Below, in pieces: positions 1 through 64,000 of a stretch of DNA of 64,000 nucleotides. Under the pieces are notes generated by a model that saw nothing but the letters and a program-made list of their open reading frames with translations, ran no database searches and was not told the origin of the DNA. This DNA comes from Thalia democratica (taxonomy: Eukaryota), in assembly GCA_965202585.1 (NCBI GenBank), contig OZ241829.1, forward strand, positions 7,316,001 through 7,380,000. Direction: 5' to 3'. The position numbers were made by a program, and so were the translations under genes. Each line of letters begins with the position of its first letter. Within the stretch, counting starts at the first letter, position 1.

Positions 1-100
1 CACAGAATCTGAAGTAATACGAGATTTTGTATTACTTCATTCAAATTATAAAACATTACTAAACTTAGTTCAAAATATTTATTATTATATGATAATATAA
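1..100 (+). pseudogene. SPT5: 3' end of SPT5-like KOW4 exon (copy entering from left of window)
   Basis: TESEVIRDFVLLHSNYKTLLNLV...*, same as 13995-14094. Confidence 0.6.
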
Positions 101-1106
101 CATAATAAACTTATTATTTATTTTTTAGTGAATAATAAAACATGTTAGCAAAAGGTGTTTTATAAACTGATAAGCTTTAAAAGCTATCAATACAATTAAC
201 CTTTTCATATTAAAAGCAAATGAAAAAATAAATGATAACTATTGAAAAGTATATTTTTTATCATGTTTCTGACTAATATGACATTATACTAATTCAATAA
301 TGCTGTGAATTCGGACTTATGATGACGTGTTTTGAACTAAACTCTTTTGAAAACCTTTATGTGAGTTGACGTTTGTTTATCAGGTTCACTAATAGTATGT
401 ATGGGGTATGATGATGCAATTTCTTATAACTTAAGTTTTGACATTTATTCTCGTAATATAAACAAACTACTGAGTTAATTTTTTTAGTTTGTTATAGAGT
501 TGTTTTTTATTAAAGATAGTTTATTGAGATAGATTAACAATATTATAATGCTATTAGCTGTTAAAAATTATTTATTTATAAAATAAGTTTAACTTTATTT
601 TTAACATTCTGTTAAGTTAACAATATTTTTATAAAAAGTTTTTTTTAAATAGACAATTTATGTTTCAATCCATTTTGACAAGTATCATAAAAAGGAAATA
701 ACTAGGATATTTTACTGTTTGTCAGTTCAGACCCTTCAATTAATTTTTGAATAACTTGAACTTTATTACAATATCAGCAAAAATTATGACATTTTCAAAA
801 GTCTTAATTAGTTACTACAAACCATCTGTTTTATTAGTTGAAAATTGAAATTTACCGTAAAATATTACAACTCACTTTATTGTTCTTATTATTATTATTA
901 TATCAAGGTTTTATATATAAGTAAATGATAAAAATTTTAGGAAGTCAAAGTGCAAAATAAATAGTAGTGTTAAGATATTGAAAAAAAAAAAAAGCAAATG
1001 AATTACTATTTTTATTGAGGTTATTTTTAAAGTAATTAAAAATCCAAACATTCTACTTTTTTAACAGCTTTAAAAATTTAGATCAGATAAAATAACTAAT
1101 AATTGT

Positions 1107-1830
1107 TTAGATAAGTTCTTCCAGTTTCACTCTTGTTACTGGATCTGGATTTAGCATGCGAACAATCAATTCAAACAAATCCTTTTCTCCAGCGTCGTTC
1201 TTATCAAAATAAGACTCTATCTTCTTAACTTCGCCTTTTATGTATACAAACTCTGGCTCTTTCAAAAAATCTATTTCATTTTCATCTATTGACAACTTTT
1301 GACCAACCTTCTTCTTTTTATCATCTTCGGTCAATTTCAAGTTTATCCTCTTGATTTCATGTTCAGTAAATGGAGCAATCATCAAGTGGTTCATCCTGAA
1401 AAGTTCCTGAACAGTATCCACCTTGAAAAGTAATTTTCCTGTAAAAAGTTCGAACAAAGTGCAGCCGATCGACCAAACATCGCATGGATACCCGATCTGT
1501 TTAAATAAAACTAATGTTAAATTTATAAGTTTAATTACAAGGCAAAACATACAAGTACTTGGTTTATAAGAATATACTTCTTTTGAAGATAATGGCTTAC
1601 TCTTTTAAAGATATTTATTTATAAGAAGTTGCTTGTTTAAGTAAAGTAGTTTACTTACTGAGTAATCTACTTAAACAACCTTGTGGCCCATTATGACGTC
1701 AGGAGCGCGGTACTGAAGTGTTGTTATGACGTCAAAGTTGAATTCTTCCTCCCAGTACACAGAGCCAAGGTCGCACAATTTGATGTCAGGCTTCATGTAA
1801 AAATCATTTTTCCACTGGTGGTAGTAATAC
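1107..1830 (-). CDS. CMGC (CLK/LAMMER-DYRK-like) protein kinase, C-lobe exons 1830-1680 and 1496-1107, copy 1
   Basis: Exon 1830-1680 reads YYYHQWKNDFYMKPDIKLCDLGSVYWEEEFNFDVITTLQYRAPDVIMGHK (DFG-equivalent DLG, YRAPE-equivalent YRAPD). A GT..AG intron (1679-1497) joins it in frame to IGYPCDVWSIGCTLFELFTG...LIVRMLNPDPVTRVKLEELI*. This matches CLK subdomains VII-XI. The gene may be a pseudogene because the upstream exons are disrupted. Confidence 0.85.
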
Positions 1831-1953
1831 CTGTTTAACAAAAATGTAAATAAACTACATATTATTTAATCATTAACATTTGAATATTAATAAAGATCTG
1901 TATAGTTTAAAATAGAATAACAAATATTTCTTTAGTAAGACGTATAATGGCAT

Positions 1954-2490
1954 TGAAATTTGAGTTAAATTACAAACGATATTAATTAAAACTGCTTAAA
2001 GCACGTTTTTTAATAAAATTATACTGTTCACTATAAATATAAAGTTTCATTTAGACCTCAAGTTAAACGAACTATGAGTTACCCCATAATCGAGTATCAC
2101 AAAATATACTTGAAATTTAAGTTAAATTACAAACGATATTAATTAAAACTGCTTAAAGCACGTTTTTTAATAAAATTATACTGTTCATTATAAATATAAA
2201 GTTTAAATTAGACCTCAAATTAAACGAACTATGAGTTACCCCATAATCGAGTATCACAAAATATACTTGAAATTTAAGTTAAATTACAAACGATATTAAT
2301 TAAAACTGCTTAAAGCACGTTTTTTAATAAAATTATACTGTTCATTATAAATATAAAGTTTAAATTAGACCTCAAATTAAACAAACTATGAGTTACCCCA
2401 TAATCGAGTATCACAAAATATACTTGAAATTTAAGTTAAATTACAAACGAGATTAATTAAAACTGCTTAAAGCACGTTTTTTAATAAAAT
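1954..2490. repeat. 157-bp tandem array, 3 monomers + 65-bp partial
   Basis: tgaaattt.agttaaatt starts at 1954, 2111, 2268 and 2425 (period 157). Confidence 0.97.
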
Positions 2491-2692
2491 ACAAATAGAG
2501 ACCTTATAAGACCAACCAAGCACCTTCTACGACAAATATCGCTCCTACAAAGTACTTGGCTAGTACTGATTTAACTGCTTCTAGAAAAAATAGTACTTCC
2601 ATCGTTTTTGGTCCTACACGTGGTTATGATCCACCTGGTTCGAGATTTCTCGGAAGTCACCTTCAAAAAAAACCCACACCAGTAATTACAAC

Positions 2693-3052
2693 TTGCTTAT
2701 GCTCGATTTCAATCGCGTAAACTCCACATTAAGCAGGGTCATAAGAAATCAGCAGTCAGATCACACGCTGTTGGAAGAACTTAAGCAGCAAATAGACCGT
2801 AACCTCAAAACGTATGAAAGTCGCTTTGATTCGCTTGATCAAAGTGCAGCTGATAATCAAAACCGTTTTGATAACATTGTCAAGCGCTTTGACTATTTTG
2901 ATAAACTTCATGATGATGCAAAAGGCGAAAGAAGGCAAAGGTGCGCAACCATTGCAAGTGTGTTACAAGTCGTTTTTCTAATTGCAATAATTGTGTTATT
3001 GTCTGTACAGTTGTACTACATTAATCAGCTCTTCTCAAGTTTCTCTGAATAA
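2693..3052 (+). CDS. Coiled-coil protein segment with C-terminal transmembrane helix (tail-anchored type), probably the 3' part of a spliced gene, copy 1
   Basis: 119-codon ORF in a GC-richer island. Heptad-like LEELKQQIDRNLK, RFDSLD..RFDNIVKRFDYFD repeats, then hydrophobic IASVLQVVFLIAIIVLLSVQLYYI and a short tail. Preceded by a Pro/Ser/Thr-rich open frame (2501-2720) in a different frame. Confidence 0.55.
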   Translation: MLMLDFNRVNSTLSRVIRNQQSDHTLLEELKQQIDRNLKTYESRFDSLDQSAADNQNRFDNIVKRFDYFDKLHDDAKGERRQRCATIASVLQVVFLIAIIVLLSVQLYYINQLFSSFSE

Positions 3053-3450
3053 CTTTTATAAATTAATTTCAGACTTCAGACTTGTGATCACCTTCTTTTT
3101 CAGTGTCACTTTTATCAGATCTTTTTTTTTATACTCTTTTGATTTATTGTCAATTTTTACCGCCTTAGCTGTTAATTCAGTTATTCGTTTTTAATAAATA
3201 TTTATAAAATTAACTTTGTTATATTATTTATTATAATTAGTTTAAAAGATAAATAGTATCAGCATTATATATACTAACTATAAAACAAGAAAATAGTTCA
3301 CAAAAAAAATAGAAATGAAGAAAAGTAACCTACCTTTTAGGAGCTGTAACATAGATGCTAATTAAAGTAAAAATTCTTAGTTATTGAAAATAGTTAAACT
3401 AAAAAAATAAGATTAAAAAAGTCAACGAAATTTTGTTAGTTAAAAAGTTT

Positions 3451-3519
3451 TGCAGTGCGGACTCGAACTCGGGTCTCTGGATTGGAAGGCACCGGTGGTG
3501 ACCTCTCCGCCATGATTCC
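3451..3519 (-). other. tRNA-derived (Gly-TCC-like) head: SINE-like element or tRNA pseudogene (also 19312, 34093, 44874, 59672)
   Basis: Minus strand carries an A box TGGCGGAGAGG, a tgccTTCCAa anticodon-loop-like segment resembling tRNA-Gly(TCC), and a B box GAGTTCGAGTC. Anticodon and T stems do not pair. Confidence 0.6.
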
Positions 3520-3549
3520 ACTTGGATACTATTACATTTTCGAGTATAC

Positions 3550-4150
3550 ATAACAAAATTATTTTCATAATCGATGTTTTGGCAACTATCAATGAAACTC
3601 GAACCCAAAATATTTTATTGGAATAAGCACAATGGAGTTAATTTGAAGCTGTATCAAAAAGTAGTGTATAAATACAACATTAAACAATTTTTGATGATTT
3701 TTATACCTTTCAAAGACAGTTCACTTGTTAACACACTATTGCACAGTCAGTTAGTTTTACTATTAATCTAATCGCAACCCTTACCGTTGGTCAGTAATTT
3801 TTTTTCTTAACATATTCAAAGAAACTTTTTGGTATCATTGCTCATTTTCCGAAAAAAAAACTGGAAAACTTACAAAAAGTCATAAAAATAACATAAAATC
3901 AAAAATTCCTCAACAAAACTTCATTTGAGTCGTTTCAAAATGTTCACAATCTGTTTGTGTGTAGCCACATTTAAAATAAATCAGCTTAAAACTCCAAGGT
4001 CGCTTTTTTTTGATCCCATTTTGCATTGGCGTGGAAATTAGAAAATCGGTTTGAGGTAAGGTGAAAGTTTCTTCAAATCATTTAAGTCAACACAGAAAAA
4101 TTAACACCAAAGCATAACTTTTTTAACAACTTTTCTAACCATATTTTAGT
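3550..4150 (-). pseudogene. Degenerate N-lobe/catalytic-loop exons of the same kinase (also ~19411-20010, 34192-34790, 44973-45575, 59771-60370)
   Basis: 3648-3550 is a 99-nt AG/GT-bounded exon, FKLTPLCLFQ*NILGSSF..., in register with CLK KLTHTDLKPENIL and phase-compatible with exon 1830. 3950-3785 reads IVNILKRLK*SFVEEFLILCYFYDFL*...RKMSNDTKKLSLNMLRKKIT (cf. CLK1 LLGLSTYDFIK...RKMAYQICKSVNFLHSNKLT). Near 4130 EKLLKKLCFGV is a possible decayed Gly loop. Multiple stops and frameshifts. Confidence 0.5.
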
Positions 4151-4365
4151 TCTTTGTGTTTGTTTTTAATGAAATTAGAACTATTCTATTCAATTTATGT
4201 TTTTTGAATTAAGTTTATTCTATTCGTTGATATTTGTAAATACCTTCTGTTACGGAATTATTGTTTTGAAAACGGAATACTTTTGTACATAGTAAAGTTA
4301 AAGAATAATTTAAGATGCTGACTAATTAAACCTAAAATATTGATAAAATTTTATCAACAAAACTG

Positions 4366-4436
4366 ATTACCACCGGACTCGATCTCGCGACCTTCTGCTC
4401 ACGCATCGGGTCGGCGATCGCTCAACCACACAACCA
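4366..4436 (-). other. Second tRNA-derived head (SINE-like), present in every unit
   Basis: Minus strand reads ggttgtgTGGTT(C/G)AGcgatcg...gaaggtcgcGAGATCGAG(T/A)CCgg. A/B-box spacing is tRNA-like, with partial acceptor pairing (ggtt/aacc in copies 3-5). Confidence 0.5.
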
Positions 4437-6740
4437 CTTGCTTGTTGACTTCAATGCTGGTATATAAAGTTTAAAAACTTTAGATTTAAATAAGTTCATT
4501 TAGTTCTTATTAGTTTACCTTTCTGTAAATTGCTATTATTTTTTTATTTGAAACATATTTACAAAGATAAGACTATTTTTTTTTACACATAACGTTTACG
4601 TGAATTTTAATACTTGAAAGTTTTCCATTCAAAAGCTGCATAAGCAGAGCAAGTGTACTTATTAAAGGCAGTTTTGATTTTTGTTGCTTAAATCTAATTT
4701 AAAAGAACAAAACTGATTAAATGCTTTGATAATAAGAAAAATTCAGCAAAACTTTTTTTTGTACATTTAAAGTATTAAAACTTTATAAATTAAACAAACT
4801 TATCCAGCTTTAATTAGCTATTATGGCAAAACAGATGCAAATATAACCTAACAGTTTATATATTATCGAAAATCAGAACTAAAGCAAAGGAGATATATTT
4901 CAAAATTAAAATCAACATTATAACAGTATTTATATCACAAAGCAAAGTTTTAAAAACATCACAAGCATTTACGTTGTCGTTTTGATATTTTGTTGAACCA
5001 GCCAGTAATGAAAATTATATGGGTATGAATAAAATGTGGTAGAATATCTAAATTTTTAAATCATCAATGCCAGGAATTCTAATTTACCTGCCTGGACTTT
5101 TATGTCAAATAAATTCACGTGGTTGCTTATAATAATGATAAATTTAAGATTATTGATTGTAATGTCTAATTAAGCAGAAGTATAATAAAGAATGTAAGTA
5201 ACTAATTAACTAATTAACTTTCAAACTAATTAACAGCAAATTTATGCTTAGATATAAGACATTAGAAAGCATTGTATATGATACACATAAAAAACCCTGT
5301 AGACCAAAACCTTGGCTTAGATGACACTAAATAATTGTTATTAAAATATAACTAAAAATAAAAACTTAAAATTATAATGGTACTTAGTCGGTGTAACGGT
5401 ATTTGATTTATTTTATCAAAAGTACAGAGCTGGTACCTACCATTGTTTATTTATTTTAACACATACGGTGGTAAATAAAGTTACATATAATGGTTAAATC
5501 TAATAGAGACCTTTAAACTCATAAAGGCTCTAAATGGAATTTTATTTGAACTGTAATTATTACTTAAAAGAAACAGTTTAATGTTTTAAATTTATAGCTA
5601 AATACATATGTTGTTTGTGATATAAAACTAGAAACGATCATGTAAATCATATAAAAATTAGATTCATTTATATACAGCAGTAAAATATTTAAGAGCTAAT
5701 TGCCATATATATTTGTATCTGTTAGTTTAATTAAGATGCACATTATCCAATACATGGACATATAGTTAGTGTTATTCATTACTATATAAGTTGCTTTATT
5801 CAACTTAAAAATATAGAGCAATTAAATAATTTATAAAACATACCATACACATACAACTAAAGTGTAAGTGAAATTTATGCTAAAATAAGTTTAAACTGTA
5901 TAAGACTACAAAGTGATGACGTAATAATAGTAAAAAGGTAAAAATGAAAAATACCACATAATTACTTGAAAAATCGTGGACAAAAACAGTCTGATTTATT
6001 AGAGTCTAATTTAAAAAATGCCTAAACTGTTTTATACAAGTTAAGACGTAAATACTTACTTGTGTAAATGGAAAACTTTAGCGTAGATTTTTCAAAATTT
6101 AAGTTGTTGTGGAGTGACAACGATACTAATTAAAACGAGAAGTTAATGTACTCACTTACTTTGTATAGTTTATCAAGTAACCAACAAAAGATGTTATCAG
6201 ACCTGCTGATCAACAAAGTAATAATAAATATAATGAAAACAGTGGTCCAACTTGAAATAGACATATACCAAATGTTAAATGTAATATAAATTAATTCAAT
6301 GTACCTACTACAGAATGTTACTTAACATATAAGTTTTAGTAGATAATTATAAATGCCATAACAACTAAACAAATGATTAGCTTTGATGTATTACAAACTT
6401 GCCATAACTAACTTTCAATTGACCTTTATACACAAACAAACTAAGATGTAATTTATTTACTAGACATACTAGGTATTTAATACTGTGTAACAATGTAATT
6501 AGTTAAATGACGACAATAAAATGATCCTGATAAATAAAATTACAAAGTAAGTTGAAGTGTTTATTATAGAATAATACCAGGCTGTCTACTACAAATCTGT
6601 AGCGTTTGTAGTACGACACCAAAGATACATACTATAAAACATAAAACTTTACTTGTAATTTATATGTGTTAATATTGAGTTTAAAAGAAAAATAACATAC
6701 CAAAAAATTGTGCGTAACTACTCGTACATCAAACAAAAAA

Positions 6741-7165
6741 CTAATTAGGTGCCGACCAGCATAAGGACGCGGCCTAAAGGACGGCTTTCGTTATTTGTGC
6801 AAAAGTCCCGGGAGCAAGAGCTGCTCCGATAGGAGCAGCTCGCAGCGGAAGGGACTTATGCACAAATAACGAAAGCTGTCCGCCACCACTTTAACTCAAA
6901 ACCGAACTACTTCTTAGAGCTCAGTACCACACTTTTATCTGGTTTGGCTGTCAGGCTTACTAACTGGGCTCCAAGCGTAATTAGGTTTTCAAGAAAAAAT
7001 GGTTGGGAGTAAAAGTGAAAAATTTTTCGCCGGCGGAGCCGGCGAAATGATTAAAAAATGATTTTTTAAATAATCTACCCAAAAATTTTCCAAAAAAAAG
7101 TTTTGATTTGGGGAAATCCCCATTTAAAAAAAAATTTGTGCGGCCTGGCTTAAAAATTAAGTGAC
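6741..7165. mobile_element. Hairpin-rich, GC-rich non-autonomous repeat of unassigned family (also starts 22761, 37542, 48336, 63129)
   Basis: GC-rich island containing a 31-bp inverted repeat (6779-6809/6851-6881) around a 10-bp hairpin, plus ttcgccggc-gga-gccggcgaa (~7026-7046) and tgggga-aa-tcccca (~7108-7121). No ORF. Boundaries approximate. Confidence 0.45.
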
Positions 7166-7598
7166 TACCTTATAGCGTACTCCTTAAACATAACCCTAAC
7201 TTACTACCATATAGTTGTTAACTAAAAAGTGAATGTCTTTTTAGGTGGTAATAGTAGGATTAATCTTAATTTGGAATATTATTAATTTTTCGAAGGTGTT
7301 ATCATTGTAATAATAAATACCTATAACCATAAAATTCGTGTGAGACATGTTAAATAGTCTTTTCTTTTTGGAATGTTTGTTGTGAAGTCTAATAACAGTA
7401 TCCAAAACTTATAACTTAAATTTGAGTACTGCTAACATTTTGATTTGATGTTATGTTAACACAATATCAATCGAAAACTTTTAATAAAATAAATGCTTAT
7501 TGTTGTTATTAGGCTGATTTACAACAAATATTCAAAAAAAAAAAGCCATTTTCACATGTCATTCTATAAAGCCACTGCAAATCATACTTGATCTAGTC

Positions 7599-7737
7599 AG
7601 ATAAGAGTCTGGCTTTTGTCAGCTAGTCACAGTTGCTTATAATAACTCTATAAAACATTAAATGGTTATCAAAGATTTGCTAGCTTTTAAATACACTTCA
7701 TAAACACTACAAGTAACAAACAACCAGACTCTTATCT
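7599..7737. mobile_element. MITE-like element, TIR AGATAAGAGTCTGG (copy a)
   Basis: agataagagtctgg ... ccagactcttatct, a perfect 14-bp inverted pair ~140 bp apart; recurs in every unit. Confidence 0.6.
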
Positions 7738-8180
7738 AATTTAGTTATATTAGCATTATCAATCATTACACTATGCTACATAATTCTAAAATATTTAACA
7801 GGAAAAACAGTGGTTAATCATTTCTTGTTATGTTTTGAACAGTTCAGAGACATAGACATGCTTGTATATTTTTTCAAAGACTAACTATTACTAAATGTTC
7901 AAATACTCTTTGATAAGAATTTCTATGGTGACACTGTCTAATAGTATACCATAAGTTTTTGTTCTACATCATCAAACAGCATTTGTATAATGAAACCAAC
8001 AAAATAATATTTGATTTAATGCTACACATAGTATCAAGCTGAAGATTAAACAAATACTTGTTTTATAATATCACTATTAAAATTCCAAACAAAGACTATT
8101 TTTGAGTACTATTAATACTCCAAAAATTAAGTTTAACACATCAGTACAACATAGCCTTTTTATAAAGATCATACATAGTC

Positions 8181-8344
8181 AGATAAAGGTCTGGTTTTTG
8201 TCAGCTAGTTACATTTAACTTATCATAACTCCATCAACTATAATAACCACTAAATGGTAATCAAAGTAATAATACACTTAAACTTTGAATTTTACTGTTA
8301 ACTATAAACACTAAAAGTGACTGAAACAAACCAGACTCTTATCT
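8181..8344. mobile_element. MITE-like element, same TIR family (copy b)
   Basis: agataaaggtctggttt ... aaaccagactcttatct; internal sequence related to copy a. Confidence 0.6.
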
Positions 8345-8544
8345 AAATTAGTAATATGAACATACAAAAACACTCAACATAAGTCAGTTGATCAAGCTGC
8401 CTTAATGTTGCTTGTGTTCCTACATGTTCACATGTAATAAAGTATATCACTTATACACAAACATTTTACACTATAGTTTTAATTGCTTAGTGGATAAAAA
8501 CATAATAATAAAACATTTACTTTAACCGTTAATAACAATGTGTC

Positions 8545-8769
8545 TCTAAAAGTGTGCAAAGATTTAAAATTAACTGCTTAATTTTAAAGCTTGTAGCATT
8601 CAGAGTTACAACAAACAAAAAAACAGCTTGATTTTTAGCTCTAAAATTGTAATTGAACATTTTACATTGTAATCTTATTACAGAGATTCATAACACATAA
8701 GTTTTGACATATAGAAAAGCTAATGAAGTTTAATAGTAACAGCTTTTAGTTAATTTTGCACACTTTAGA
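8545..8769. mobile_element. Possible old MITE with imperfect TIR (tctaaaagtgtgcaaa / tttgcacactttaga)
   Basis: Imperfect ~16-bp inverted pair ~225 bp apart; no TSD recognised. Confidence 0.35.
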
Positions 8770-8846
8770 AACTCTATAGGATATTTTATAATCTAAAATT
8801 TTCATTGTAATTAATTCATAATTTTATGACTAGCATTTATGAATAC

Positions 8847-9091
8847 CAGGGCTGCCACTCTTCAATTCGAAAACTGTACTCTTTTAACCAAATTTCAGCT
8901 TAATTTGAATAAAATTAGAAGCAGCAAAAGCTGTTAATGTACTTTACTTGATATCAATTGAGTTTGAGCACTAATTTACACTAATGATATTCTATATTTA
9001 CAAAAAAATGACAATATTTAATGAAACAATTAATTTTCAAGTATTTAAAATTGAGAAAGCACTACTAAAAAAATAAGTTTTGGCAGCCCTG
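8847..9091. mobile_element. 245-bp hAT-like MITE, TIR CAGGGCTGCCA (also 24873-25117, 50448-50692)
   Basis: Perfect 11-bp TIR cagggctgcca/tggcagccctg, similar to hAT-type termini. The flanking 8-mers (atgaatac/aaaaataa) match only partly. Confidence 0.6.
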
Positions 9092-9340
9092 AAAAATAAT
9101 CTTATATGAAATTTATTATCTTAACATTAACTATTTTGTATAACATATAAAGCACTTACCTCAGTAAGAGCAGTAAACCAAGAACAGACCTGATATTCAA
9201 ATTGCCACAAGAAGGTTAGTGGCTACAAGGGTTGATATAGATGACTGCTGTAGAAATAGAAATGTCCAATTTGTTTGTGCTTAATAAAAACTTTTCAGTG
9301 CAACTATGATTAAATAGAAACACATGATAACTCATGTAGC

Positions 9341-10380
9341 AGACTGCTGATTTGAGACACTTTTTCACCATAAAGGTAAAGAATTTTCTCTGAAATCATG
9401 AAAAAAAAAAGATAATTAATCATATGGTAAGAGTAGGAGACTGTTGGTTTGAGATACTTTTTCAACATAAAGAAAAAACTTTCCTCTGAAATCATAAAAT
9501 ATTAGATAATTAATCATATGATCAGAGTAGAATACTGTTGATTCAAGATACTTTCAAAACATACAGACATTATTTACATTTCTTTTCTAGCATAAACAGT
9601 TTAAATTTCAACTGTTAAAGACAATGCTAATATTTTTTTCAAACCAAGTAATTTATTTTATGTGTCTGCTTTTAGTACCTTTTATTACTTACAAAAAGGT
9701 AAACTCTAAAATGATTTATGAAAGTAAAGTAAAAAATGACAAGAGCTGCTACCAGTAACACAACATTTTACTAATGAATGCAATTTCATAAATATTTCTG
9801 CAAACAGAATTGAACATGATTATCACAATAAAGTAGAAGTCTGTTGATTTAAGACAATTTTTTAACATACAGGTAAAGACTTTTCTGTGAAGTTGTCAAC
9901 AAAAAGAAAGTAAAACACAAGATTGTTACTATAAAGTAGAAATCTGCTGATTTAAGACAGTTTTTCAACATACAGGTAAAGACTTTTCTTTGAAGTTGTA
10001 AACAAAAAGATAATTAAACACAAGATCATCACTATAAAGTAGAAGTCTGTTGATTTAAATCACTTTGGCAACATGCAGATGATGTAGATTTGTTTTGTGT
10101 TCTTTTTTTTCAACCATAAACAGTTCAAGTTTCAACTTTTAAAGACAACTTTGATTTTTTTCATACTAAGTGATTTATACTAAGTGATTGGTTTTGAATT
10201 GTATGTGCTTGTACTTAAAGTACCTTTTATAACTTACAAAAACTTATAAAAGGAAAACTCTAAAAATACTTATGTAAAGAAAGTTTAAGTAAAAATTTGA
10301 TGACCTACCACTCCTATGAAAACTTTCCTAAAATGAATTGCAATTTCTTAAAAAATTTCTGCAAACAGAATTTTTGTATA
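9341..10380. repeat. Old nested duplications: six ~40-bp cores in two triplets (spacing ~95-103 bp within a triplet) inside a ~500-bp tandem duplication
   Basis: Cores like agtctgttgatttaagacaattttttaacatacaggtaaag at ~9341, 9438, 9532, 9838, 9941 and 10044; 9595-9820 resembles 10108-10375. Confidence 0.7.
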
Positions 10381-10489
10381 ATTACGTAACAAATAAATCT
10401 TGTGCAAAAAATTCACTTGGTGACATTCACGAGTTCTCTCTTCTCTCGCTTTGATAATTTTAAGCTAATTTTAAACTTTTAGCTATACT

Positions 10490-15826: not shown

Positions 15827-15949
15827 CTGTTTAACAAAAATGTAAATAAACTACATATTATTTAATCATTAACATTTGAATATTAATAAATATCTGTATA
15901 GTTTAAAATAGAATAACAAATATTTCTTTAGTGAGACGTATAATGGCAT

Positions 15950-53601: not shown

Positions 53602-55707
53602 TGTCACAGCCAGTTGACGAAGTTGATCTACTTGCCCAGGAGACTTGGTGAGAGTTGGTAAAGGAGAATTGTCTGGTTTGACTTGAAAAATAACTAAAAT
53701 TGACGTCACAATGCTGCCAAGTCACCTAGAGTTTAAGGTTAGCCAACATTAGCTTGTAAACTCAATAAAATATTAAAATAAAGTATATTTCGTCAAACTT
53801 TCATAAGTTAAGAGAAAATTATAAGTTTATTAACTTTATCAAAAAATAAGTTTTATATATAGTAATTGTAAACTAAGCTAACTAGTTGAAAGCTGAAATA
53901 AGATTTATTTTTGTCCGAGGAGTCTCTGGAATTAAAAGCGCAACGAGGTCAGGAAACAATTTAATGTTGGTAACCATGTTAAATTTATCAATGGAAAGCA
54001 TATGGTTCATACAGGTAACAATAAACGCTAATGTAAACTTTCAGCGATTATTATTACTTGTTCAGCTAAAGTTTTAGATAATGTTCAAGCTAATATGGAT
54101 TTTACCTCGTTATAGTTTTAAGTTAATAGTATAAGTAGCTTTAAAGTTATATTTTTATAAAATTATTTTGAACTTTTGTTATAGTTTTCTGTGTTTTAGA
54201 ATTAGTGAATGTTGTTATTATAATAACTTAAATTTTTTAATCAACTTTACGGTTACTGTGTATATAATAATAGTAGTAAAAAAGTACAATACGTTTTTTT
54301 CGTACTATGAATAATAAATACAAATATTTTTTTTATTTTAAAGCTGAAACACATATACTTATTATATTTATTTAAACAGGTCTAGTATTGACAGTTAAAC
54401 CGAATAATGTTGTCATCATAGCAGACCTGACACTAGGAAAGCTGGAAGTTTTGCCTCGAGACCTGCACCTATTCGATAGGAGGTTTCAAATACAGCAACT
54501 GTTAAAATGTTGTCTAATACAATGTGATGCATGATTGAATAAAAAAAAATCAATTAGAAAAATATGTTGTAGTGCGAAGTACATATAAACAAGTCGAACG
54601 AAAATTAAATATTATATTGATTGTTTGTATTGACAAACAGTTGTTAAAATTTTAATTTTATCATCAATTAATTTTCAGTTTTAAAGTGACAAAATAAGTC
54701 TTTACCACTTTGTCTACAAAATGTCTAGAAATCAGCCCTATCGACTTTAAATGATTAGGCCTTTCTTGAAATTAACATTGAGAAAAACTACAAAAAAATT
54801 GAAATGAAATAACATTAAGTATATTTGTGAAGACTTTGAAGTATATTTGTGAAGACTTTAAACTTATTTATAAAGGGCTGCCAACCTCTACCTTAGATTT
54901 TTAAAAAACTTTTATGTAGCTATAAAATAATTTCAAGTATGAAACAATCGAAATTTACTTTATTTAATATAGCAATAAATTTTATTTTTAAGTATTTTTA
55001 ATAATTTAAGTAAACTTAGTAGGATTATATTTTTCTGGGCAGTTATATTACCTTTATTGTGTACAGTTTGGTTTGACAGGTGCTACAGCAGAATGCGTGT
55101 TTTAAATACAAGTGTTTTGTATCTTACATGATTTACCGATTTGAGTAATTTGTACTCAAAGCAATAATATAAAACTTTTTTAAAAGTTAAACAAGTACAG
55201 TAGGTTTTCGCTTAAGTACGTATCTAGTACGTATCTAATTACAACTAATTTTGAACACTGACCTTAAAGTAAACTCTACCAATATGAAATTATAAATCTA
55301 CAGCTTTTTATGTTTGCTTTTTTTGAACTAGAATATCTTAAATAAAAATTCTTTAGAGCAAGTCTTCTACTTTATTGGGTGTTGTGAATATAAAACTAGT
55401 GCACTGCTAAGCTTTAAAACTTTTGTACGCTAGCTATTACATTATACATATAATTCATATTTTTGTTGAACAGTATTAATAAATTGTCTAATATTGTTTC
55501 ATTTCGTAAATTTAGATAAAACATTTAAGAATTGATGTTAATGAAAAATACGCAAGAAATAAACAATTTAACAGCGGTCATAAAGTTTTCGGAAAAAATT
55601 ATTACGGCACAGAATCTGAAGTAATACGAGATTTTGTATTACTTCATTCAAATTATAAAACATTACTAAACTTAGTTCAAAATATTTATTATTATATGAT
55701 AATATAA
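53602..55707 (+). pseudogene. SPT5: SPT5-like KOW2-KOW4 relic, further copy
   Basis: Same exons as 28027-30132. Confidence 0.8.
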
Positions 55708-56712
55708 CATAATAAACTTATTATTTATTTTTTAGTGAATAATAAAACATGTTAGCAAAAGGTGTTTTATAAACTGATAAGCTTTAAAAGCTATCAATAC
55801 AATGAACCTTTTCATATTAAAAGCAAATGAAAAAATAAATGATAACTATTGAAAAGTATATTTTTTATCATGTTTCTGACTAATATGACATTATACTAAT
55901 TCAATAATGCTGTGAATTCGGACTTATGATGACGTGTTTTGAACTAAACTCTTTTGAAAACCTTTATGTGAGTTGACGTTTGTTTATCAGGTTCACTAAT
56001 AGTATGTATGGGGTATGATGATGCAATTTCTTATAACTTAAGTTTTGACATTTATTCTCGTAATATAAACAAACTACTGAGTTAATTTTTTTAGTTTGTT
56101 ATAGAGTTGTTTTTTATTAAAGATAGTTTATTGAGATAGATTAACAATATTATAATGCTATTAGCTGTTAAAAATTATTTATTTATAAAATAAGTTTAAC
56201 TTTATTTTTAACATTCTGTTAAGTTAACAATATTTTTATAAAAAGTTTTTTTTAAATAGACAATTTATGTTTCAATCCATTTTGACAAGTATCATAAAAA
56301 GGAAATAACTAGGATATTTTACTGTTTGTCAGTTCAGACCCTTCAATTAATTTTTGAATAACTTGAACTTTATTACAATATCAGCAAAAATTATGACATT
56401 TTCAAAAGTCTTAATTAGTTACTACAAACCATCTGTTTTATTAGTTGAAAATTGAAATTTACCGTAAAATATTACAACTCACTTTATTGTTCTTATTATT
56501 ATTATTATATCAAGGTTTTATATATAAGTAAATGATAAAAATTTTAGGAAGTCAAAGTGCAAAATAAATAGTAGTGTTAAGATATTGAAAAAAAAAAAAG
56601 CAAATGAATTACTATTTTTATTGAGGTTATTTTTAATGTAATTAAAAATCTAAACATTCTACTTTTTTAACAGCTTTAAAAATTTAGATCAGATAAAATA
56701 ACTAATAATTGT

Positions 56713-57442
56713 TTAGATAAGTTCTTCCAGTTTCACTCTTGTTACTGGATCTGGATTTAGCATGCGAACAATCAATTCAAACAAATCCTTTTCTCCAGCG
56801 TCGTTCTTATCAAAATAAGACTCTATCTTCTTAACTTCGCCTTTTATGTATACAAACTCTGGCTCTTTCAAAAAATCTATTTCATTTTCATCCTTTGACA
56901 ACTTTTGACCAACCTTCTTCTTTTTATCATCTTCGGTCAATTTCAAGTTTATCCTCTTGATTTCATGTTGAGTAAATGGACCAATCATCAAGTGGATCAT
57001 CCTGAAAAGTTCCTGAACAGTATCCACCTTGAAAAGTAATTTTCCTGTAAAAAGTTCGAACAAAGTGCAGCCGATCGACCAAACATCGCATGGATACCCG
57101 ATCTGTTGAAATAATACTAATGTTAAGTTTATAAATCCTAGTTTAATTACGAGGCAAAACATACAAGTACTTTGTTTATAAGATTACACTTCTTTTGAAG
57201 ATAATGGCTTACTCTTTTAAAGATATTTATTTATAATAAGTTGCTTGTTTAAGTAAAGTAGTTTACTTACTGAGTAATCTACTTAAACAACCTTGTGGCC
57301 CATTATGACGTCAGGAGCGCGGTACTGAAGTGTTGTTATGACGTCAAAGTTGAATTCTTCCTCCCAGTACACAGAGCCAAGGTCGCACAATTTGATGTCA
57401 GGCTTCATGTAAAAATCATTTTTCCACTGGTGGTAGTAATAC
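56713..57442 (-). CDS. CMGC kinase C-lobe exons (57442-57292, 57102-56713), copy 5
   Basis: Same two exons, open. Confidence 0.85.
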
Positions 57443-57565
57443 CTGTTTAACAAAAATGTAAATAAACTACATATTATTTAATCATTAACATTTGAATATT
57501 AATAAATATCTGTATAGTTTAAAATAGAATAACAAATATTTCTTTAGTAAGACGTATAATGGCAT

Positions 57566-58711
57566 TGAAATTTGAGTTAAATTACAAACGATATTAATTA
57601 AAACTGCTTAAAGCACGTTTTTTAATAAAATTATACTGTTCATTTAGACCTCAAGTTAAACGAACTATGAGTTACCCCATAATCGAGTATCACAAAATAT
57701 ACTTGAAATTTAAGTTAAATTACAAACGATATTAATTAAAACTGCTTAAAGCACGTTTTTTAATAAAATTATACTGTTCATTATAAATATAAAGTTTAAA
57801 TTAGACCTTAAATTAAACGAACTATGAGTTACCCCATAATTGAGTATCACAAAATATACTTGAAATTTAAGTTAAATGACAAACGATATTAATTAAAACT
57901 GCTTAAAGCACGTTTTTTAATAAAAATATATTATTCATTAAAAATATAAAGTTTCATTTAGACCTCAAGTTAAACGAACTATGAGTTACCCCATAATTGA
58001 GTATCACAAAATATACTTGAAATTTAAGTTAAATGACAAACGATATTAATTAAAACTGCTTAAAGCACGTTTTTTAATAAAAATATATTATTCATTAAAA
58101 ATATAAAGTTTCATTTAGACCTCAAGTTAAACGAACTATGAGTTACCCCATAACCGAGTATCACAAAATATACTTGAAATTTAAATTAAATTACAAACGA
58201 GATTAAATCAAACTGCTTAAAGCACGTTTTTTAATAAAAATATACTATTCATTACAAATATAAAGTTTCATTTAGACCTCAAATTAAACGAACTATGAGT
58301 TACCCCATAATCGAGTATCACAAAATATACTTAAAATTTAAGTTAAATTACAAACGATATTAATTAAAACTGCTTAAAGCACGTTTTTTAATAAAATTAT
58401 ACTGTTCATTATAAATATAAAGTTTCATTTAGACCTCAAGTTAAACGAACTATGAGTTACCCCATAATCGAGTATCACAAAATATACTTGAAATTTAAGT
58501 TAAATTACAAACGATATTAATTAAAACTGCTTAAAGCACGTTTTTTAATAAAATTATACTGTTCATTATAAATATAAAGTTTCATTTAGACCTCAAGTTA
58601 AACGAACTATGAGTTACCCCATAATCGAGTATCACAAAATATACTTGAAATTTAAGTTAAATTACAAACGAGATTAATTAAAACTGCTTAAAGCACGTTT
58701 TTTAATAAAAT
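57566..58711. repeat. 157-bp tandem array, 7 monomers + partial
   Basis: Same monomer order as copy 3. Confidence 0.97.
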
Positions 58712-58913
58712 ACAAATAGAGACCTTATAAGACCAACCAAGCACCTTCTACGACAAATATCGCTCCTACAAAGTACTTGGCTAGTACTGATTTAACTGCT
58801 TCTAGAAAAAATAGTACTTCCATCGTTTTTGGTCCTACACGTGGTTATGATCCACCTGGTTCGAGATTTCTCGGAAGTCACCTTCAAAAAGAACCCACAC
58901 CAGTAATTACAAC

Positions 58914-59273
58914 TTGCTTATGCTCGATTTCAATCGCGTAAACTCCACATTAAGCAGGGTCATAAGAAATCAGCAGTCAGATCACACGCTGTTGGAAGAA
59001 CTTAAGCAGCAAATAGACCGTAATCTCAAAACGTATGAAAGTCGCTTTGATTCGCTTGATCAAAGTGCAGCTGATAATCAAAACCGTTTTGATAACATTG
59101 TCAAGCGCTTTGACTATTTTGATAAACTTCATGATGATGCAAAAGGCGAAAGAAGGCAAAGGTGCGCAACCATTGCAAGTGTGTTACAAGTCGTTTTTCT
59201 AATTGCAATAATTGTGTTATTGTCTGTACAGTTGTACTACATTAATCAGCTCTTCTCAAGTTTCTCTGAATAA
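58914..59273 (+). CDS. Coiled-coil + C-terminal TM ORF, copy 5
   Basis: Identical 119-aa translation, with one synonymous AAC>AAT change. Confidence 0.55.
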   Translation: MLMLDFNRVNSTLSRVIRNQQSDHTLLEELKQQIDRNLKTYESRFDSLDQSAADNQNRFDNIVKRFDYFDKLHDDAKGERRQRCATIASVLQVVFLIAIIVLLSVQLYYINQLFSSFSE

Positions 59274-62200
59274 CTTTTATAAATTAATTTCAGACTTCAG
59301 ACTTGTGATCACCTTCTTTTTCAGTGTCACTTTTATCAGATCTTTTTTTTTATACTCTTTTGATTTATTGTCAATTTTTACCGCCTTAGCTGTTAATTCA
59401 GTTATTCGTTTTTAATAAATATTTATAAAATTAACTTTGTTATATTATTTATTATAATTAGTTTAAAAGATAAATAGTATCAGCATTATATATACTAACT
59501 ATAAAACAAGAAAATAGTTCACAAAAAAAATAGAAATGAAGAAAAGTAACCTACCTTTTAGGAGCTGTAACATAGATGCTAATTAAAGTAAAAATTCTTA
59601 GTTATTGAAAATAGTTAAACTAAAAAAATAAGATTAAAAAAGTCAACGAAATTTTGTTAGTTAAAAAGTTTTGCAGTGCGGACTCGAACTCGGGTCTCTG
59701 GATTGGAAGGCACCGGTGGTGACCTCTCCGCCATGATTCCACTTGGATACTATTACATTTTCGAGTATACATAACAAAATTATTTTCATAATCGATGTTT
59801 TGGCAACTATCAATGAAACTCGAACCCAAAATATTTTATTGGAATAAGCACAATGGAGTTAATTTGAAGCTGTATCAAAAAGTAGTGTATAAATACAACA
59901 TTAAACAATTTTTGATGATTTTTATACCTTTCAAAGACAGTTCACTTGTTAACACACTATTGCACAGTCAGTTAGTTTTACTATTAATCTAATCGCAACC
60001 CTTACCGTTGGTCAGTAATTTTTTTTCTTAACATATTCAAAGAAAGCTTTTTGGTATCATTGCTCATTTTCCGAAAAAAAAAACTGGAAAACTTACAAAA
60101 AGTCATAAAAATAACATAAAATCAAAAATTCCTCAACAAAACTTCATTTGAGTCGTTTCAAAATGTTCACAATCTGTTTGTGTGTAGCCACATTTAAAAT
60201 AAATCAGCTTAAAACTCCAAGGTCGCTTTTTTTTGATCCCATTTTGCATTGGCGTGGAAATTAGAAAATCGGTTTGAGGTAAGGTGAAAGTTTCTTCAAA
60301 TCATTTAAGTCAACACAGAAAAATTAACACCAAAGCATAACTTTTTTAACAACTTTTCTAACCATATTTTAGTTCTTTGTGTTTGTTTTTAATGAAATTA
60401 GAACTATTCTATTCAATTTATGTTTTTTGAACTAAGTTTATTCTATTCGTTGATATTTGTAAATACCTTCTGTTACGGAATTATTGTTTTGAAAACGGAA
60501 TACTTTTGTACATAGTAAAGTTAAAGAATAATTTAAGATGCTGACTAATTAAACCTAAAATATTGATAAAATTTTATCAATAAAACTGGTTACCACCGGT
60601 CTCGATCTCGCGACCTTCTGCTCACGCATAAGGTCGGCGATCGCTGAACCACACAACCACTTGCTTGTTGACTTCAATGCTGGTATATAAAGTTTAAAAA
60701 CTTTAGATTTATATAAGTTCATTTAGTACTTATTAGTTTACCTTTCTGTAAATTGCTATTATTTTTTATTTGAAACATATTTACAAAGATAAGACTGTTT
60801 TTTTTTACACATAACGTTTACGTGAATTTTAATACTTGAAAGTTTTCCATTCAAAAGCTGCATAAGCAGAGCAAGTGTACTTATTAAAGGCAGTTTAGAT
60901 TTTTGTTGCTTAAATCTAATTTAAAAGAACAAAACTGATTAAATGCTTTGATAATAAGAAAAATTCAGCAAAACTTTTTTTTGTACATTTAAAGTATTAA
61001 AACTTTATAAATTAAACAAACTTATCCAGCTTTAATTAGCTATTATGGCAAAACAGATGCAAATATAACCTAACAGTTTATATATTATCGAAAATCAGAA
61101 CTAAAGCAAAGGAGATATATTTCAAAATTAAAATCAACATTATAACAGTATTTATATCACAAAGCAAAGTTTTAGAAACATCACAAGCATTTACGTTGTC
61201 GTTTTTATATTTTGTTGAACCAGCCAGTAATGAAAATTATATGGGTATGAATAAAATGTGGTAGAATATCTAAATTTTTAAATCATCAATGCCAGGAATT
61301 CTAATTTACCTGCCTGGACTTTTATGTCAAATAAATTCACGTGGTTGCTTATAATAATGATAAATTTAAGATTATTGATTGTAATGTCTAATTAAGCAGA
61401 AGTATAATAAAGAATGTAAGGCTGAACTACATTAATTCCAGGCGTTTCTACAGTTAAAAGACCAAGTTTACCCTTCATTTTACATATGATTTGATTTTTT
61501 AAAATAATGAAAAGTGTTAAGGTTAACCGAGAAAAAAAAGATACTTTAAAAAACTTAAACTTAGTAGATGTACTTCAAAACATAGGTAAGTAAGGATATC
61601 AATGTCTTTCAAACTAATTAACAGCAAATTTATGCTTAGATATAAGACATTAGAAAGCATTGTATATGATACACATAAAAAACCCTGTAGACCAAAACCT
61701 TGGCTTAGATGGCACTAAATAATTGTTATTAAAATATAACTAAAAATAAAAACTTAAAGTTATAATGGTACTTAGTCGGTGTAACGGTATTTGATTTATT
61801 TTATCAAAAGTACAGAGCTTGTACCTACCATTGTTTATTTATTTTAACACATACGGTGGTAAATAAAGTTATATATAATGGTTAAATCTAATAGAGACCT
61901 TTAAACTCATAAAGGCTCTAAATGGAATTTTATTTGAACTGTAATTATTACTTAAAAGAAACAGTTTAATGTTTTAAATTTATAGCTAAATACATATGTT
62001 GTTTGTGATATAAAACTAGAAACGATCATGTAAATCATATAAAAATTAGATTCATTTATATACAGCAGTAAAATATTTAAGAGCTAATTGCCATATATAT
62101 TTGTATCTGTTAGTTTAATTAAGATGCACATTATCCAATACATGGACATATAGTTAGTGTTATTCATTACTATATAAGTTGCTTTATTCAACTTAAAAAT

Positions 62201-64000
62201 ATAGAGCAATTAAATAATTTATAAAACATACCATACACATACAACTAAAGTGTAAGTGAAATTTATGCTAAACTAAGTTTAAACTGTATAAGACTACAAA
62301 GTGATGACGTAATAATAGTAAAAAGGTAAAAATGAAAAATATCACATAATTACTTGAAAAATCGTGGACAAAAACAGTCTGATTTATTAGAGTCTAATTT
62401 AAAAAATGCCTAAACTGTTTTATACAAGTTAAGACGTAAATACTTACTTGTGTAAATGGAAAACTTTAGCGTAGATTTTCCAAAATTTAAGTTGTTGTGG
62501 AGTGACAACGATACTAATTAAAACGAGAAGTTAATGTACTCACTTACTTTGTATAGTTTATCAAGTAACCAACAAAAGATGTTATCAGACCTGCTGATCA
62601 ACAAAGTAATAATAAATATAATCAAAACAGTGGTCAAACTTGAAATAGACATATACCAAATGTTAAATGTAATATAAATTAATTCAATGTACCTACTACA
62701 GAATGTTACTTAACATATAAGTTTTAGTAGATAATTATAAATGCCATAACAACTAAACAAATGATTAGCTTTGATGTATTACAAACTTGCCATAACTAAC
62801 TTTCAATTGACCTTTATAATTAAACAAACTAAGATGTAATTTATTTACTAGACATACTAGGTATTTAATACTGTGTAACAATGTAATTAGCTAAATGACG
62901 ACAATAAAATGATCCTGATAAATAAAATTACAAAGTAAGTTGAAGTGTTTATTATAGAATAATACCAGGCTGTCTACTACAAATCTGTAGCGTTTGTAGT
63001 ACGACACCAAAGATACATACTATAAAACATAAAACTTTACTTGTAATTTATATATGTTAATATTGAGTTTAAAAGAAAAATAACATACCAAAAAATTGTG
63101 CGTAACTACTCGTACATCAAACAAAAAACTAATTAGGTGCCGACCAGCATAAGGACGCGGCCTAAAGGACGGCTTTCGTTATTTGTGCAAAAGTCCCGGG
63201 AGCAAGAGCTGCTCCGATAGGAGCAGCTCGCAGCGGGAGGGACTTAAAAACAAATAACGAAAGCTGTCCGCTACCACTTTAACCCAAAACCGAACTACTT
63301 CTTAGAGCTCAGTACCACACTTTTATCTGGTTTGGCTGTCAGGCTTACTAACTGGGCTCAAAGCGTAATTAGGTTTTTAAGAAAAAATGGTTGGGAGAAA
63401 AAGTGAAAAATTTTTCGCCGGCAGAGCCGGCGAAATGACTTAAAAATGATTTTTTAAATAATCTACCCAAAAATTTTCCAAAAAAACTTTTGATTTGGGG
63501 AAATCCCCATTTTGAAAAAAATTTGTGCGGCTTGGCTTAAAAATTAAGTGACTACCTTATAGCGTACTCCTTAAACATAACCCTAACTTACTACCATATA
63601 GTTGTTAACTAAAAAATGAATGTCTTTTTAGGTGGTAATAGTAGGATTAATCTTAATTTGGAATATTATTAATTTTTCGAAGGTGTTATCATTGTAATAA
63701 TAAATACCTATAACCATAAAATTCGTGTGAGACATGTTAAATAGTCTTTTCTTTTTGGAATGTTTGTTGTGACACAGTCTAATAACAGTATCCAAAACTT
63801 ATAACTTAAATTTGAGTACTGCTAACATTTTGATTTGATGTTATGTTAACACAATATCAATCGAAAACTTTTAATAAAATAAATACTTATTGTAGTTATT
63901 AGGCTGATTTACAACAAATATTCAAAAAAAAGCCATTTTCACATGTCATTCTATAAAGCCACTGCAAATCATACTTGATCTAGTCAGATAAGAGTCTGGC

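Follow-up and report, generated by a model that had tools for sequence, protein, structure and literature searches.

The window, i.e., the whole stretch of 64,000 nucleotides analyzed here, most probably represents a young, degenerate sub-array within a supercluster of tandem units of about 0.77 Mb, whose resident genes were killed by a rearrangement, amplified and left to drift neutrally; we put the probability of this reading at roughly 0.7. None of the kinase, putative tail-anchored membrane protein (TM) and SPT5 sequences in the window is intact. It is because all of these gene pieces are broken, with intact versions present in neighboring arrays, that the window looks like decaying duplicated DNA, and a working protein is not likely to be made from any of its copies.

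Five head-to-tail units in the window

Self-BLAST resolves the window into five head-to-tail units of 14.8–16.0 kb, with pairwise identities of 96.6–99.87%, which bears out the initial annotation in its count of at least five near-identical units of 14–16 kb. The array is thus a macrosatellite by its kilobase-scale units, their head-to-tail order and their high identity, and the differences in unit length come mainly from the copy number of a 157-bp minisatellite. All units are oriented along the plus strand. Unit A (positions 1–13994), whose left end is set by the window, shares 96.6–99.3% identity with unit B (13995–30032), which is complete at 16,038 bp and is used here as the reference. 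Unit C (30033–39548; 99.04% identical to unit B, at an offset of 14,781) is cut by an assembly gap of 100 N (39549–39648), to the right of which lie a unit tail (39649–40813), the first 29 nt of which are the end of the third SPT5 piece, the complete unit D (40814–55607; 14,794 bp), 99.87% identical to unit C across 10.7 kb, and unit E (55608–64000), 99.39% identical to unit D and with its right end set by the window. The left flank of the gap ends at unit-B coordinate 24767 (offset 14,781) and the right flank restarts at 28868 (offset 10,781); because these coordinates disagree, the flanks are discontinuous and out of register, and at least 4,100 bp of unit (at least 4.1 kb; unit-B coordinates 24768–28867), possibly with whole units besides, is hidden at the gap.

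The supercluster to which these units belong covers C5:6.96–7.73 Mb together with three unplaced contigs and comprises about 50 units; within the same limits, a TM probe detects at least 46 copies. Intact sister units of 22 kb are found in the same supercluster, and one of them carries two kinase genes and as many TM genes of about 300 aa, all of them open. It is hard to credit that misassembly accounts for the array or for its copy number. The gap does lie within the array, with its flanks out of register, the unplaced contig C600 has three units identical to those of the window, and a higher-order repeat of about 300 kb inside the supercluster could represent uncollapsed haplotypes. However, the units diverge by 0.1–3.4% and differ in minisatellite length, and are therefore distinct copies. 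Moreover, words of the unit occur in runs of two organism labels and in marine metagenomes, from 10 studies, with at least half of the words present in 11 runs, and contigs at least 99% identical to the unit were recovered from two runs.

A ciliate-type genetic code was considered, since each unit has only two ORFs of at least 90 aa, and was rejected: the exons are bordered by GT..AG in the standard code, and the long TGA-only frames arise because the DNA of the window is 73% A+T. A Pfam search of 20 stop-free frames of the unit returned the kinase only, and neither Rfam (E ≤ 0.01) nor tRNA scanning detected an RNA gene in one whole unit.

Remnants of a kinase, a membrane protein and SPT5

The initial annotation assigned a CLK/DYRK-like kinase on the minus strand to each unit. 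A CLK-like minus-strand piece is indeed present in every one of them, but it amounts to exons 2 and 3 (C-lobe) only. In unit B, exon 3 (15097–15486, minus strand; 1107–1496, 31135–31524, 41916–42305 and 56713–57102 in the other units) has 129 codons and a stop, and runs through the C-lobe from IGYPCDVWSIGC to the end of the protein (Pkinase positions 172–257). Inspection of the sequence places a GT..AG intron at 15487–15675 on the same strand, splitting GHK/IGYP and missing from the class-2 and intronless paralogues. Exon 2 (15676–15826, minus strand; 1680–1830, 31714–31864, 42495–42645 and 57292–57442 in the other units) covers the DLG to APD segment and has an intact AG acceptor, with no exon 1 upstream; tblastn did not find exon 1 anywhere in the unit, even with matches accepted at E ≤ 50. 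The window piece matches Pfam Pkinase (3.4e-9) at profile positions 134–257 only, as compared with positions 1–132 and 136–259 for the kinase of an intact unit. Window copies have no complete catalytic domain (Gly-rich loop, VAIK lysine, HxDxKxxN), the entire N-lobe and the catalytic loop being absent; the kinases of neighboring units carry GEGAFGTV, AIKAM and HTDIKTANILL. The rest of the cluster has 12 copies of class-1 exon 1 and the window has none, as compared with about 33 copies of exon 3.

By closest similarity among CMGC kinases, the family belongs with CLK/LAMMER. The best solved relatives of the window exon 3 are CLK3 and CLK1 (CLK3 at 5.4e-13 versus PRP4 at 3e-7), and an intact paralogue is closest to CLK1–4 (CLK1 at 2e-40 versus DYRK2 at 9e-25). 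The family shares with CLK kinases a CMGC-type insert, in addition to having CLK1–4 as best matches. It differs from them in having DLG for DFG and APD for APE, and in the loss of the LAMMER motif, the segment aligned with EHLAMMERILG being QELFRMIHLMIGPF in the window and EELFLVINETVGPF in the C6 paralogue; the family has, moreover, undergone a lineage-specific expansion, some of its members on C6 being intronless.

On the opposite strand of each unit, a coiled-coil/TM ORF adjoins the 157-bp minisatellite, so that the initial annotation correctly paired this ORF with a repeat of variable copy number. It belongs to the 5'-cut remnant of a putatively tail-anchored coiled-coil gene (18360–18913, plus strand; 2499–3052, 33142–33694, 43923–44475 and 58720–59273 in the other units), which has a 1-nt frameshift near 18533 followed by an ATG-initiated ORF of 117 aa (18560–18913). 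Near its C-terminus the protein reads VVFLIAIIVLLSV, then 14 residues, a putative tail anchor. TM frames are open for 310–339 aa in about 12 copies, and reach 140 aa or are broken in the unit type of the window. The ORF had been taken to lie within an intron of the kinase, which is contradicted by the lack of kinase exon 1 anywhere in the unit; comparison with intact units identifies the ORF as what is left of a divergently oriented neighboring gene. No Pfam family matched the TM protein; the 6 relatives found by a word search all come from marine metagenome contigs, and a profile search found two true clusters among 1.84 billion representatives, the DUF7310- and tropomyosin-type matches being discarded as generic coiled-coil noise. 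An Atlas search returned sub-threshold leads only. A possible single-copy relative of the TM gene is located at C8:7.10 Mb.

The SPT5 relic consists of three exon pieces on the plus strand (28061–28129, with an in-frame stop, 28367–28444 and 28801–28896; other complete copies at 12033–12868 and 53636–54471) that are collinear with the true SPT5 gene and match human SPT5 residues 489–521. As described initially, it converges on a kinase, namely that of the next unit; it is complete in three units and represented by its last 29 nt in a fourth. The pieces, of 23, 26 and 32 aa, do not make an SPT5 gene, with its NGN, KOWs and C-terminal repeats. The true gene, with NGN and KOW5, is found on another chromosome (C7:28.42 Mb), and the SPT5 piece in the window is probably a scrap of much greater age than the array, carried along as filler. 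The relic had also been proposed to silence its parental gene through small RNAs. Having located that gene, we find that relic and true exons share 62–66% nucleotide identity and that no exact match between them exceeds 13 nt, a maximum equal to that of shuffled controls, so that silencing of SPT5 based on complementarity is not possible.

A probable rearrangement at the minisatellite

The 157-bp minisatellite (plus strand; TRF) occupies 15949–18351 in unit B, with 14.8 copies, and 1953–2490 (3.4 copies), 32061–33133, 42842–43914 and 57639–58711 (6.8 copies each) in the other units. Homology to the intact units ends at 15948, inside intron 1 of the kinase gene, and restarts at 18359, inside the TM gene, precisely where the minisatellite begins and finishes; the segment that it fills corresponds, in the intact 22-kb units, to intergenic DNA together with kinase exon 1 on one side and some 128 codons of the TM gene on the other. 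This arrangement suggests an ancestral unit with resident CLK-derived kinase genes and orphan tail-anchored coiled-coil genes of about 300 aa, in which the minisatellite would have displaced about 4.3 kb in one rearrangement, taking out kinase exon 1, the spacer that separates the two divergent genes and the 5'-most ~128 codons of the membrane gene. The kinase and the membrane gene would thus have been killed together, by a single event. The dead unit may then have multiplied by unequal exchange, with gene conversion from intact paralogues keeping the copies similar and making them mosaic, and the copies would now be drifting neutrally.

Recent mutations, gene conversion and possible functions of the truncated copies

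Across 15 truncated copies of the kinase, private substitutions comprise 20 non-synonymous changes (one of them a stop) and 4 synonymous changes, i.e., 83% non-synonymous versus a neutral expectation of 81%, and recent mutations in these copies look neutral. The kinase copies with exon 1 are constrained, with dN/dS of 0.08–0.23 in the kinase core and private substitutions of 25:14 in seven copies (p = 0.0096 for constraint), a ratio whose difference from that of the truncated copies is not significant (Fisher p = 0.15). In units C and D, the TM remnant has lost one more nucleotide, at the equivalent of 18646, a fresh frameshift in two of the five units. Gene conversion is evident from the four-gamete test, which fails for 46% of site pairs, with Rm = 40 in 864 bp; sequence exchange among copies of the supercluster is very frequent. 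The broken gene pieces, the neutral private substitutions and the fresh TM frameshift fit the fallback offered by the initial annotation, a recent and largely neutral segmental amplification.

Three observations count against decay: pairwise dN/dS among the truncated kinase copies is 0.41, exons 2 and 3 are still open in 14 of the 15 truncated copies analyzed, and the protein encoded by the 117-aa ORF is identical in 13 copies. We infer that the value of 0.41 reflects variation imported by conversion from constrained paralogues. Moreover, where trans-splicing operates in an animal, a gene that has lost its 5' end but kept its acceptor could still be expressed. The remnants might, then, be working short proteins, with a C-lobe-only pseudokinase acting as a decoy from an ATG in exon 2, alongside the 117-aa tail-anchored protein. 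Both frames are open in most copies, the exon-2 splice acceptor is kept, and the 117-aa ORF had been picked up by gene callers on independent contigs from marine metagenomes (P0001–P0003). Nevertheless, we regard this as very unlikely: the 117-aa ORF is frameshifted in two of the five window copies and in three copies on C600, the private changes in the kinase follow the neutral pattern, one of them being a stop, the 5' region that would bear the promoter is gone, and two metatranscriptomes yielded no transcript contigs for either frame.

Those two datasets are small and marine, neither of them being the animal's own RNA, and their contigs leave both the kinase exons and the ORF uncovered, in samples whose DNA contains 61–69% of the unit's words. 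The RNA-library contigs sit only on the two parts of highest DNA copy number, the minisatellite and the hairpin region (see below), which fits DNA carry-over. This bears on the idea that small RNAs are made from the truncated copies, as in Su(Ste): convergent transcription of the SPT5-relic and kinase strands would produce dsRNA, and the resulting small RNAs would tune the intact kinase paralogues. Truncated and intact class-1 exons do have long identical stretches in common, exon 2 being nearly invariant, the SPT5 relic and the kinase converge, and about 20 dead kinase copies stand beside about 12 with exon 1. Against it are the position of the RNA-library contigs, the exclusion of SPT5 as a target and a pattern of new mutations that requires no function, and we give such a role little credence. 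A drive or suppressor locus, or a silencer of the parental SPT5 and CLK genes, as first envisaged, thus finds no support either in the match to SPT5 or in the transcript contigs.

A non-coding core shared with other arrays

The remainder of the unit includes a non-coding core of 4.35 kb (18827–23177, plus strand; 2966–7159, 33608–37958, 44389–48752 and 59187–63546 in the other units), which starts within TM-domain codons, has no terminal repeats at its ends and gave no Pfam, Rfam or tRNA match. Some tRNA-like stretches around 19310–19390 are not callable as tRNAs. The 3' part of the core contains a GC-richer block with a very stable hairpin (22799–22901, plus strand; 6779–6881, 37580–37682, 48374–48476 and 63167–63269 in the other units), part of a cassette present in at least 570 copies genome-wide, as counted by 30-mer matches; a minisatellite 30-mer has 1,380 matches genome-wide. 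A copy at C5:68.2 Mb, considered as a solo unit, proved array-like too.

These figures raise the alternative that a self-propagating backbone, made of the minisatellite followed by the core and the hairpin cassette, seeds macrosatellites, and that the kinase, TM and SPT5 pieces are its cargo. In addition to the copy numbers, arrays on C1 and C4 pair a short 157-bp array with the cassette 6.3–8.8 kb downstream, in the same orientation, sister arrays on C2, C10, C11, C291 and C132 match the core at 96–97% identity and the flanks at only 78–85%, and the unit combines pieces of unlinked genes, the true SPT5 being on C7. However, the core begins inside the last 28 codons of the TM gene in all sister arrays, and therefore copying went out of this gene cluster; a mid-core probe detects only 87 copies, mostly in this supercluster. 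Moreover, purifying selection acts in neighboring units on the kinase and TM genes, which are intact and multi-exon there and behave as residents rather than as captured pieces. The stop-free frames of the unit contain no transposase, Rep, RT or integrase domain, and the ends of the core bear no terminal repeats. Helitron/Helentron-type elements with central tandem repeats have defined termini and a 3' hairpin, with Rep/helicase in autonomous copies; the unit has a hairpin, and no Helitron_like_N (PF14214) match was found in the genome, a weak test run without a positive control. On balance, we find it improbable that the window is explained in this way. Slightly less remote, though still doubtful, is the wider proposition that the minisatellite and hairpin-cassette backbone, found in many macrosatellite arrays on at least three chromosomes, is an undescribed self-amplifying element that repeatedly turns neighboring genes, here those of a kinase and a tail-anchored protein, into 12–30-kb tandem arrays. 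On that view, array making would operate throughout the genome, with the window as a single decayed outcome. In any event, the window array and many other macrosatellites have non-coding modules in common, and the genome seems unusually rich in macrosatellites. If such modules drive array formation, they would constitute a new route to gene amplification, which the present data do not show.

Comparison with known arrays

Under the preferred reading, that of a degenerate sub-array of resident genes, the window exemplifies how tandem gene clusters shed dead copies, with the corpse then amplified, in a cluster of about 50 units that pairs CLK-derived kinases with an orphan, putatively tail-anchored family nearly without database relatives. 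Repeats are reported to exceed 80% in published work on salp genomes, which does not mention macrosatellites (PMC10686999), and a search of the literature on tunicate macrosatellites found none. As in the Stellate/Su(Ste) arrays, many degenerate copies stand beside intact paralogues with which they have long identical stretches in common; in contrast, the kinase remnant of the window is not covered by RNA-library contigs, and the SPT5 target has no shared word above chance.

The human D4Z4/DUX4 and CT47 arrays and mouse Sly/Slx are gene-carrying macrosatellites or ampliconic gene arrays. The window resembles them in its kilobase-scale head-to-tail units, each with gene sequence, in the variation of copy number and of internal minisatellite length, and in the exchange between units that homogenizes the copies. 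It differs from them in that all gene copies of its sub-array are truncated, the intact genes residing in other sub-arrays.

Organization of the array

A single tandem repeat extends across the window (C5:7316001-7380000; G+C about 27%, in an assembly of 801.8 Mb). By k-mer offsets and self-BLAST it resolves into unit A (1-13994), unit B (13995-30032; 16,038 bp; our reference for unit coordinates), unit C (30033-39548), unit D (40814-55607; 14,794 bp) and unit E (55608-64000), with identities between 96.6% (A versus B, over the initial 2.5 kb of A) and 99.87% (C versus D). The initial annotation's proposal of at least five near-identical head-to-tail units is thus borne out, as is the variable-copy repeat that it saw in each of them: this is a 157-bp minisatellite, present in 3.4, 14.8, 6.8, 6.8 and 6.8 copies in units A to E, and its copy number makes up most of the differences in unit length. 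The sequence is real and comes from an abundant marine animal, since the words of the unit are present in sequencing runs under two organism labels and in marine metagenomes, across 10 studies.

The array is interrupted by a gap of 100 N, the flanks of which are not in register by self-BLAST. The left flank stops at unit-B coordinate 24767 and the right flank restarts at 28868, so the gap conceals 4.1 kb or more of unit sequence, possibly together with whole units. The first bases after the gap are the final 29 nt of SPT5 piece 3 (see below). An unplaced contig of about 41 kb (C600) contains three units that match window units B-E at 100% identity, at spacings of 14,781 and 14,794 bp; it is probably a second, redundant assembly of the gap's surroundings. 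The unit succession of C5:6.978-7.051 Mb (C5 is the contig of the window) is repeated at 7.278-7.350 Mb, at an offset of 299,834-299,860 bp; the recurrence reflects a higher-order duplication or, alternatively, haplotypes that were not collapsed.

Gene remnants in the unit

Only two ORFs of at least 90 aa (standard code) are found per unit. Kinase exon 2 (15826-15676, minus strand) extends from the DLG motif to APD and has an intact splice acceptor, and exon 3 (15486-15100, minus strand) runs from IGYPCDVWSIGC to the stop; both have GT..AG borders. Together they cover positions 134-257 of the Pfam Pkinase profile and most closely resemble CLK3/CLK1. Exon 1 was not found anywhere in the unit by tblastn (E<=50), so that the minus-strand CLK/DYRK-like kinase previously assigned to each unit is reduced to CLK-like exons 2 and 3.

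Directly after the minisatellite, the plus strand carries the 3' portion of a coiled-coil gene (18360-18913) that terminates in a hydrophobic helix (the TM gene). Relative to full-length copies it is about 128 codons short and carries a 1-nt frameshift near 18533; it retains a 117-aa ORF beginning with ATG, which an additional 1-nt deletion disrupts too in units C and D. The window unit is homologous to full-length units up to 15948, in intron 1 of the kinase, and again from 18359, in the TM gene, in exact coincidence with both ends of the minisatellite; a single rearrangement therefore took out about 4.3 kb. The lost stretch comprised the first kinase exon, the spacer separating the two divergently oriented genes and the 5' portion of the TM gene, and the minisatellite now occupies its place. 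The ORF, described as nested in the initial annotation, is thus the remnant of a neighbouring gene and does not sit in a kinase intron. With these corrections the initial observation stands.

The SPT5 relic is present as described, in three pieces of 23 aa (28061-28129, containing a stop), 26 aa (28367-28444) and 32 aa (28801-28896), which in order and spacing correspond to three exons of the genuine SPT5 gene (C7:28.42 Mb; NGN and KOW5 domains). Relic and gene are 62-66% identical at the nucleotide level, and the longest word common to both is 13 nt, the same as in shuffled controls. Silencing of the parental SPT5 by small RNAs from the unit, which had been suggested together with a drive or suppressor locus, is thereby excluded; for the kinase the drive or small-RNA idea is unsupported.

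The surrounding cluster and its intact genes

In the genome, 30-base probes match 46 times for the TM ORF, 34 times for the kinase and 23 times for the SPT5 relic, all matches being confined to C5:6.96-7.73 Mb or to the unplaced contigs C600, C787 and C281. Protein searches of the genome reveal two kinase classes in this cluster, about 50% identical to one another, and TM-gene copies with open frames of 88 to 339 aa. Class-1 exon 1 is found in only 12 copies, none of them in the window, versus about 33 copies of exon 3. A 22-kb unit type at C5:7192001-7222000 (loci L022-L024) has four open, apparently intact genes, as checked with Pfam: a three-exon class-1 and a two-exon class-2 CLK-like kinase, and two tail-anchored coiled-coil paralogues of about 300 aa that are 38% identical. 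The intact kinases match CLK1-4 far better than other kinases and do not retain the LAMMER motif.

A GT..AG intron that splits GHK/IGYP (window 15487-15675; 4889-5102 of L013, a locus of the same genome) is extra in class-1 genes, and missing from class-2 genes and from intronless kinase genes on C6; a likely origin is intron gain, or an insertion that came to serve as an intron. The C6 genes form clusters at 13.44-13.68, 18.89, 19.38 and 30.97 Mb (L018-L020), encode CLK-like proteins of 330-424 aa, about 40% identical to the window kinase, and are a lineage-specific expansion.

The TM protein matched no Pfam family. Its six relatives from a word search are all on marine metagenome contigs, and among 1.84 billion representatives only two true clusters were found, the remaining matches being generic coiled coils. 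Outside the cluster there is a lone TM-gene relative (C8:7100587-7100937), with 82% identity and an open frame of 285 aa; it is a candidate for the single-copy progenitor.

Selection and expression

Selection was examined in an alignment of 26 kinase copies (864 bp; exons searched individually and concatenated for substitution counts). Over all copies pairwise dN/dS is about 0.45, and for window-like copies 0.41. The variation is mosaic, however: the four-gamete test fails at 46% of informative site pairs and calls for a minimum of 40 exchange events, so that much of it was probably imported from constrained paralogues. Private, and hence recent, substitutions separate the classes. Of such changes in the 15 truncated copies, 20 are non-synonymous (including one stop) and 4 synonymous, or 83% non-synonymous versus 81% under neutrality; in the 7 exon-1-bearing copies the counts are 25 and 14, a departure towards constraint (p=0.0096). 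Between the two groups the difference in ratio is not significant (Fisher p=0.15). The exon-1-bearing copies, with dN/dS of 0.08-0.23 in the kinase core and 0.69 in the insert, evolve under ordinary purifying selection; nothing indicates diversifying selection.

Contigs of two metatranscriptomes were compared with 1050-7049; the DNA samples paired with them contain 61-69% of the unit's words. The contigs are confined to the minisatellite and the hairpin region, where DNA depth is by far the greatest, so that DNA carry-over is a sufficient explanation. No contig of these two thin metatranscriptomes falls on the kinase exons or the TM ORF, which is compatible with low-level expression. A DNA contig that seemed to skip the second kinase intron, with AATTTTA at the junction, was rejected as mRNA: it is a class-2 paralogue.

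With broken genes and near-neutral private substitutions, recent neutral segmental amplification, offered earlier as the fallback, becomes the best reading. We put at roughly 70% the probability that the window represents a sub-array that was recently amplified and is decaying neutrally, part of a real cluster of kinase and tail-anchored-protein genes.

Non-coding modules shared among macrosatellites

The segment at 18827-23177 (the core) is 96-97% identical to array units on C2, C10, C11, C291, C132 and at C5:68.2 Mb, whereas the flanking 23915-27068 is only 78-85% identical to them. In these sister arrays the shared segment begins at an identical base, inside the TM gene's final 28 codons, and no other part of the TM or kinase genes is found there; the sister arrays were therefore copied out of the C5 cluster and not the reverse. 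Genome-wide, a mid-core probe has 87 copies and a 30-mer from the GC-richer 3' block (22760-23180) has 570. This block contains a hairpin of about 100 nt at 22799-22901 (-80.3 kcal/mol; z -12.3) and two smaller ones.

No transposon protein domain was detected in the unit (Pfam on stop-free frames), a search of the genome for Helitron Rep, run without a positive control, gave no match, and outside the kinase, TM and SPT5 pieces the rest of the unit matched nothing in Pfam, Rfam or tRNA searches. Two stretches of the core (19310-19390 and 20198-20362) are tRNA-like, with T-arm-like GGTTCGAGTCC motifs; ARAGORN calls no tRNA in them, and they are probably SINE-type debris.

The 157-bp repeat (15949-18351 and copies) has 1,380 matches genome-wide. 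In arrays on C1 (13.13-13.22 Mb) and C4 (3.63-3.84, 11.56-11.72, 25.1-25.4 and 77.8-78.3 Mb) a short 157-bp array has the orientation of the hairpin block and is situated 6.3-8.8 kb upstream of it; minisatellite and hairpin block are thus two non-coding modules common to many macrosatellites of this genome. Published salp genomes are reported to consist of more than 80% repeats, with no mention of macrosatellites (PMC10686999), and no publication on tunicate macrosatellites was found in the literature. The arrangement of minisatellite and hairpin block points to a backbone shared across the macrosatellites of T. democratica, and it is this thread that we consider the most interesting.
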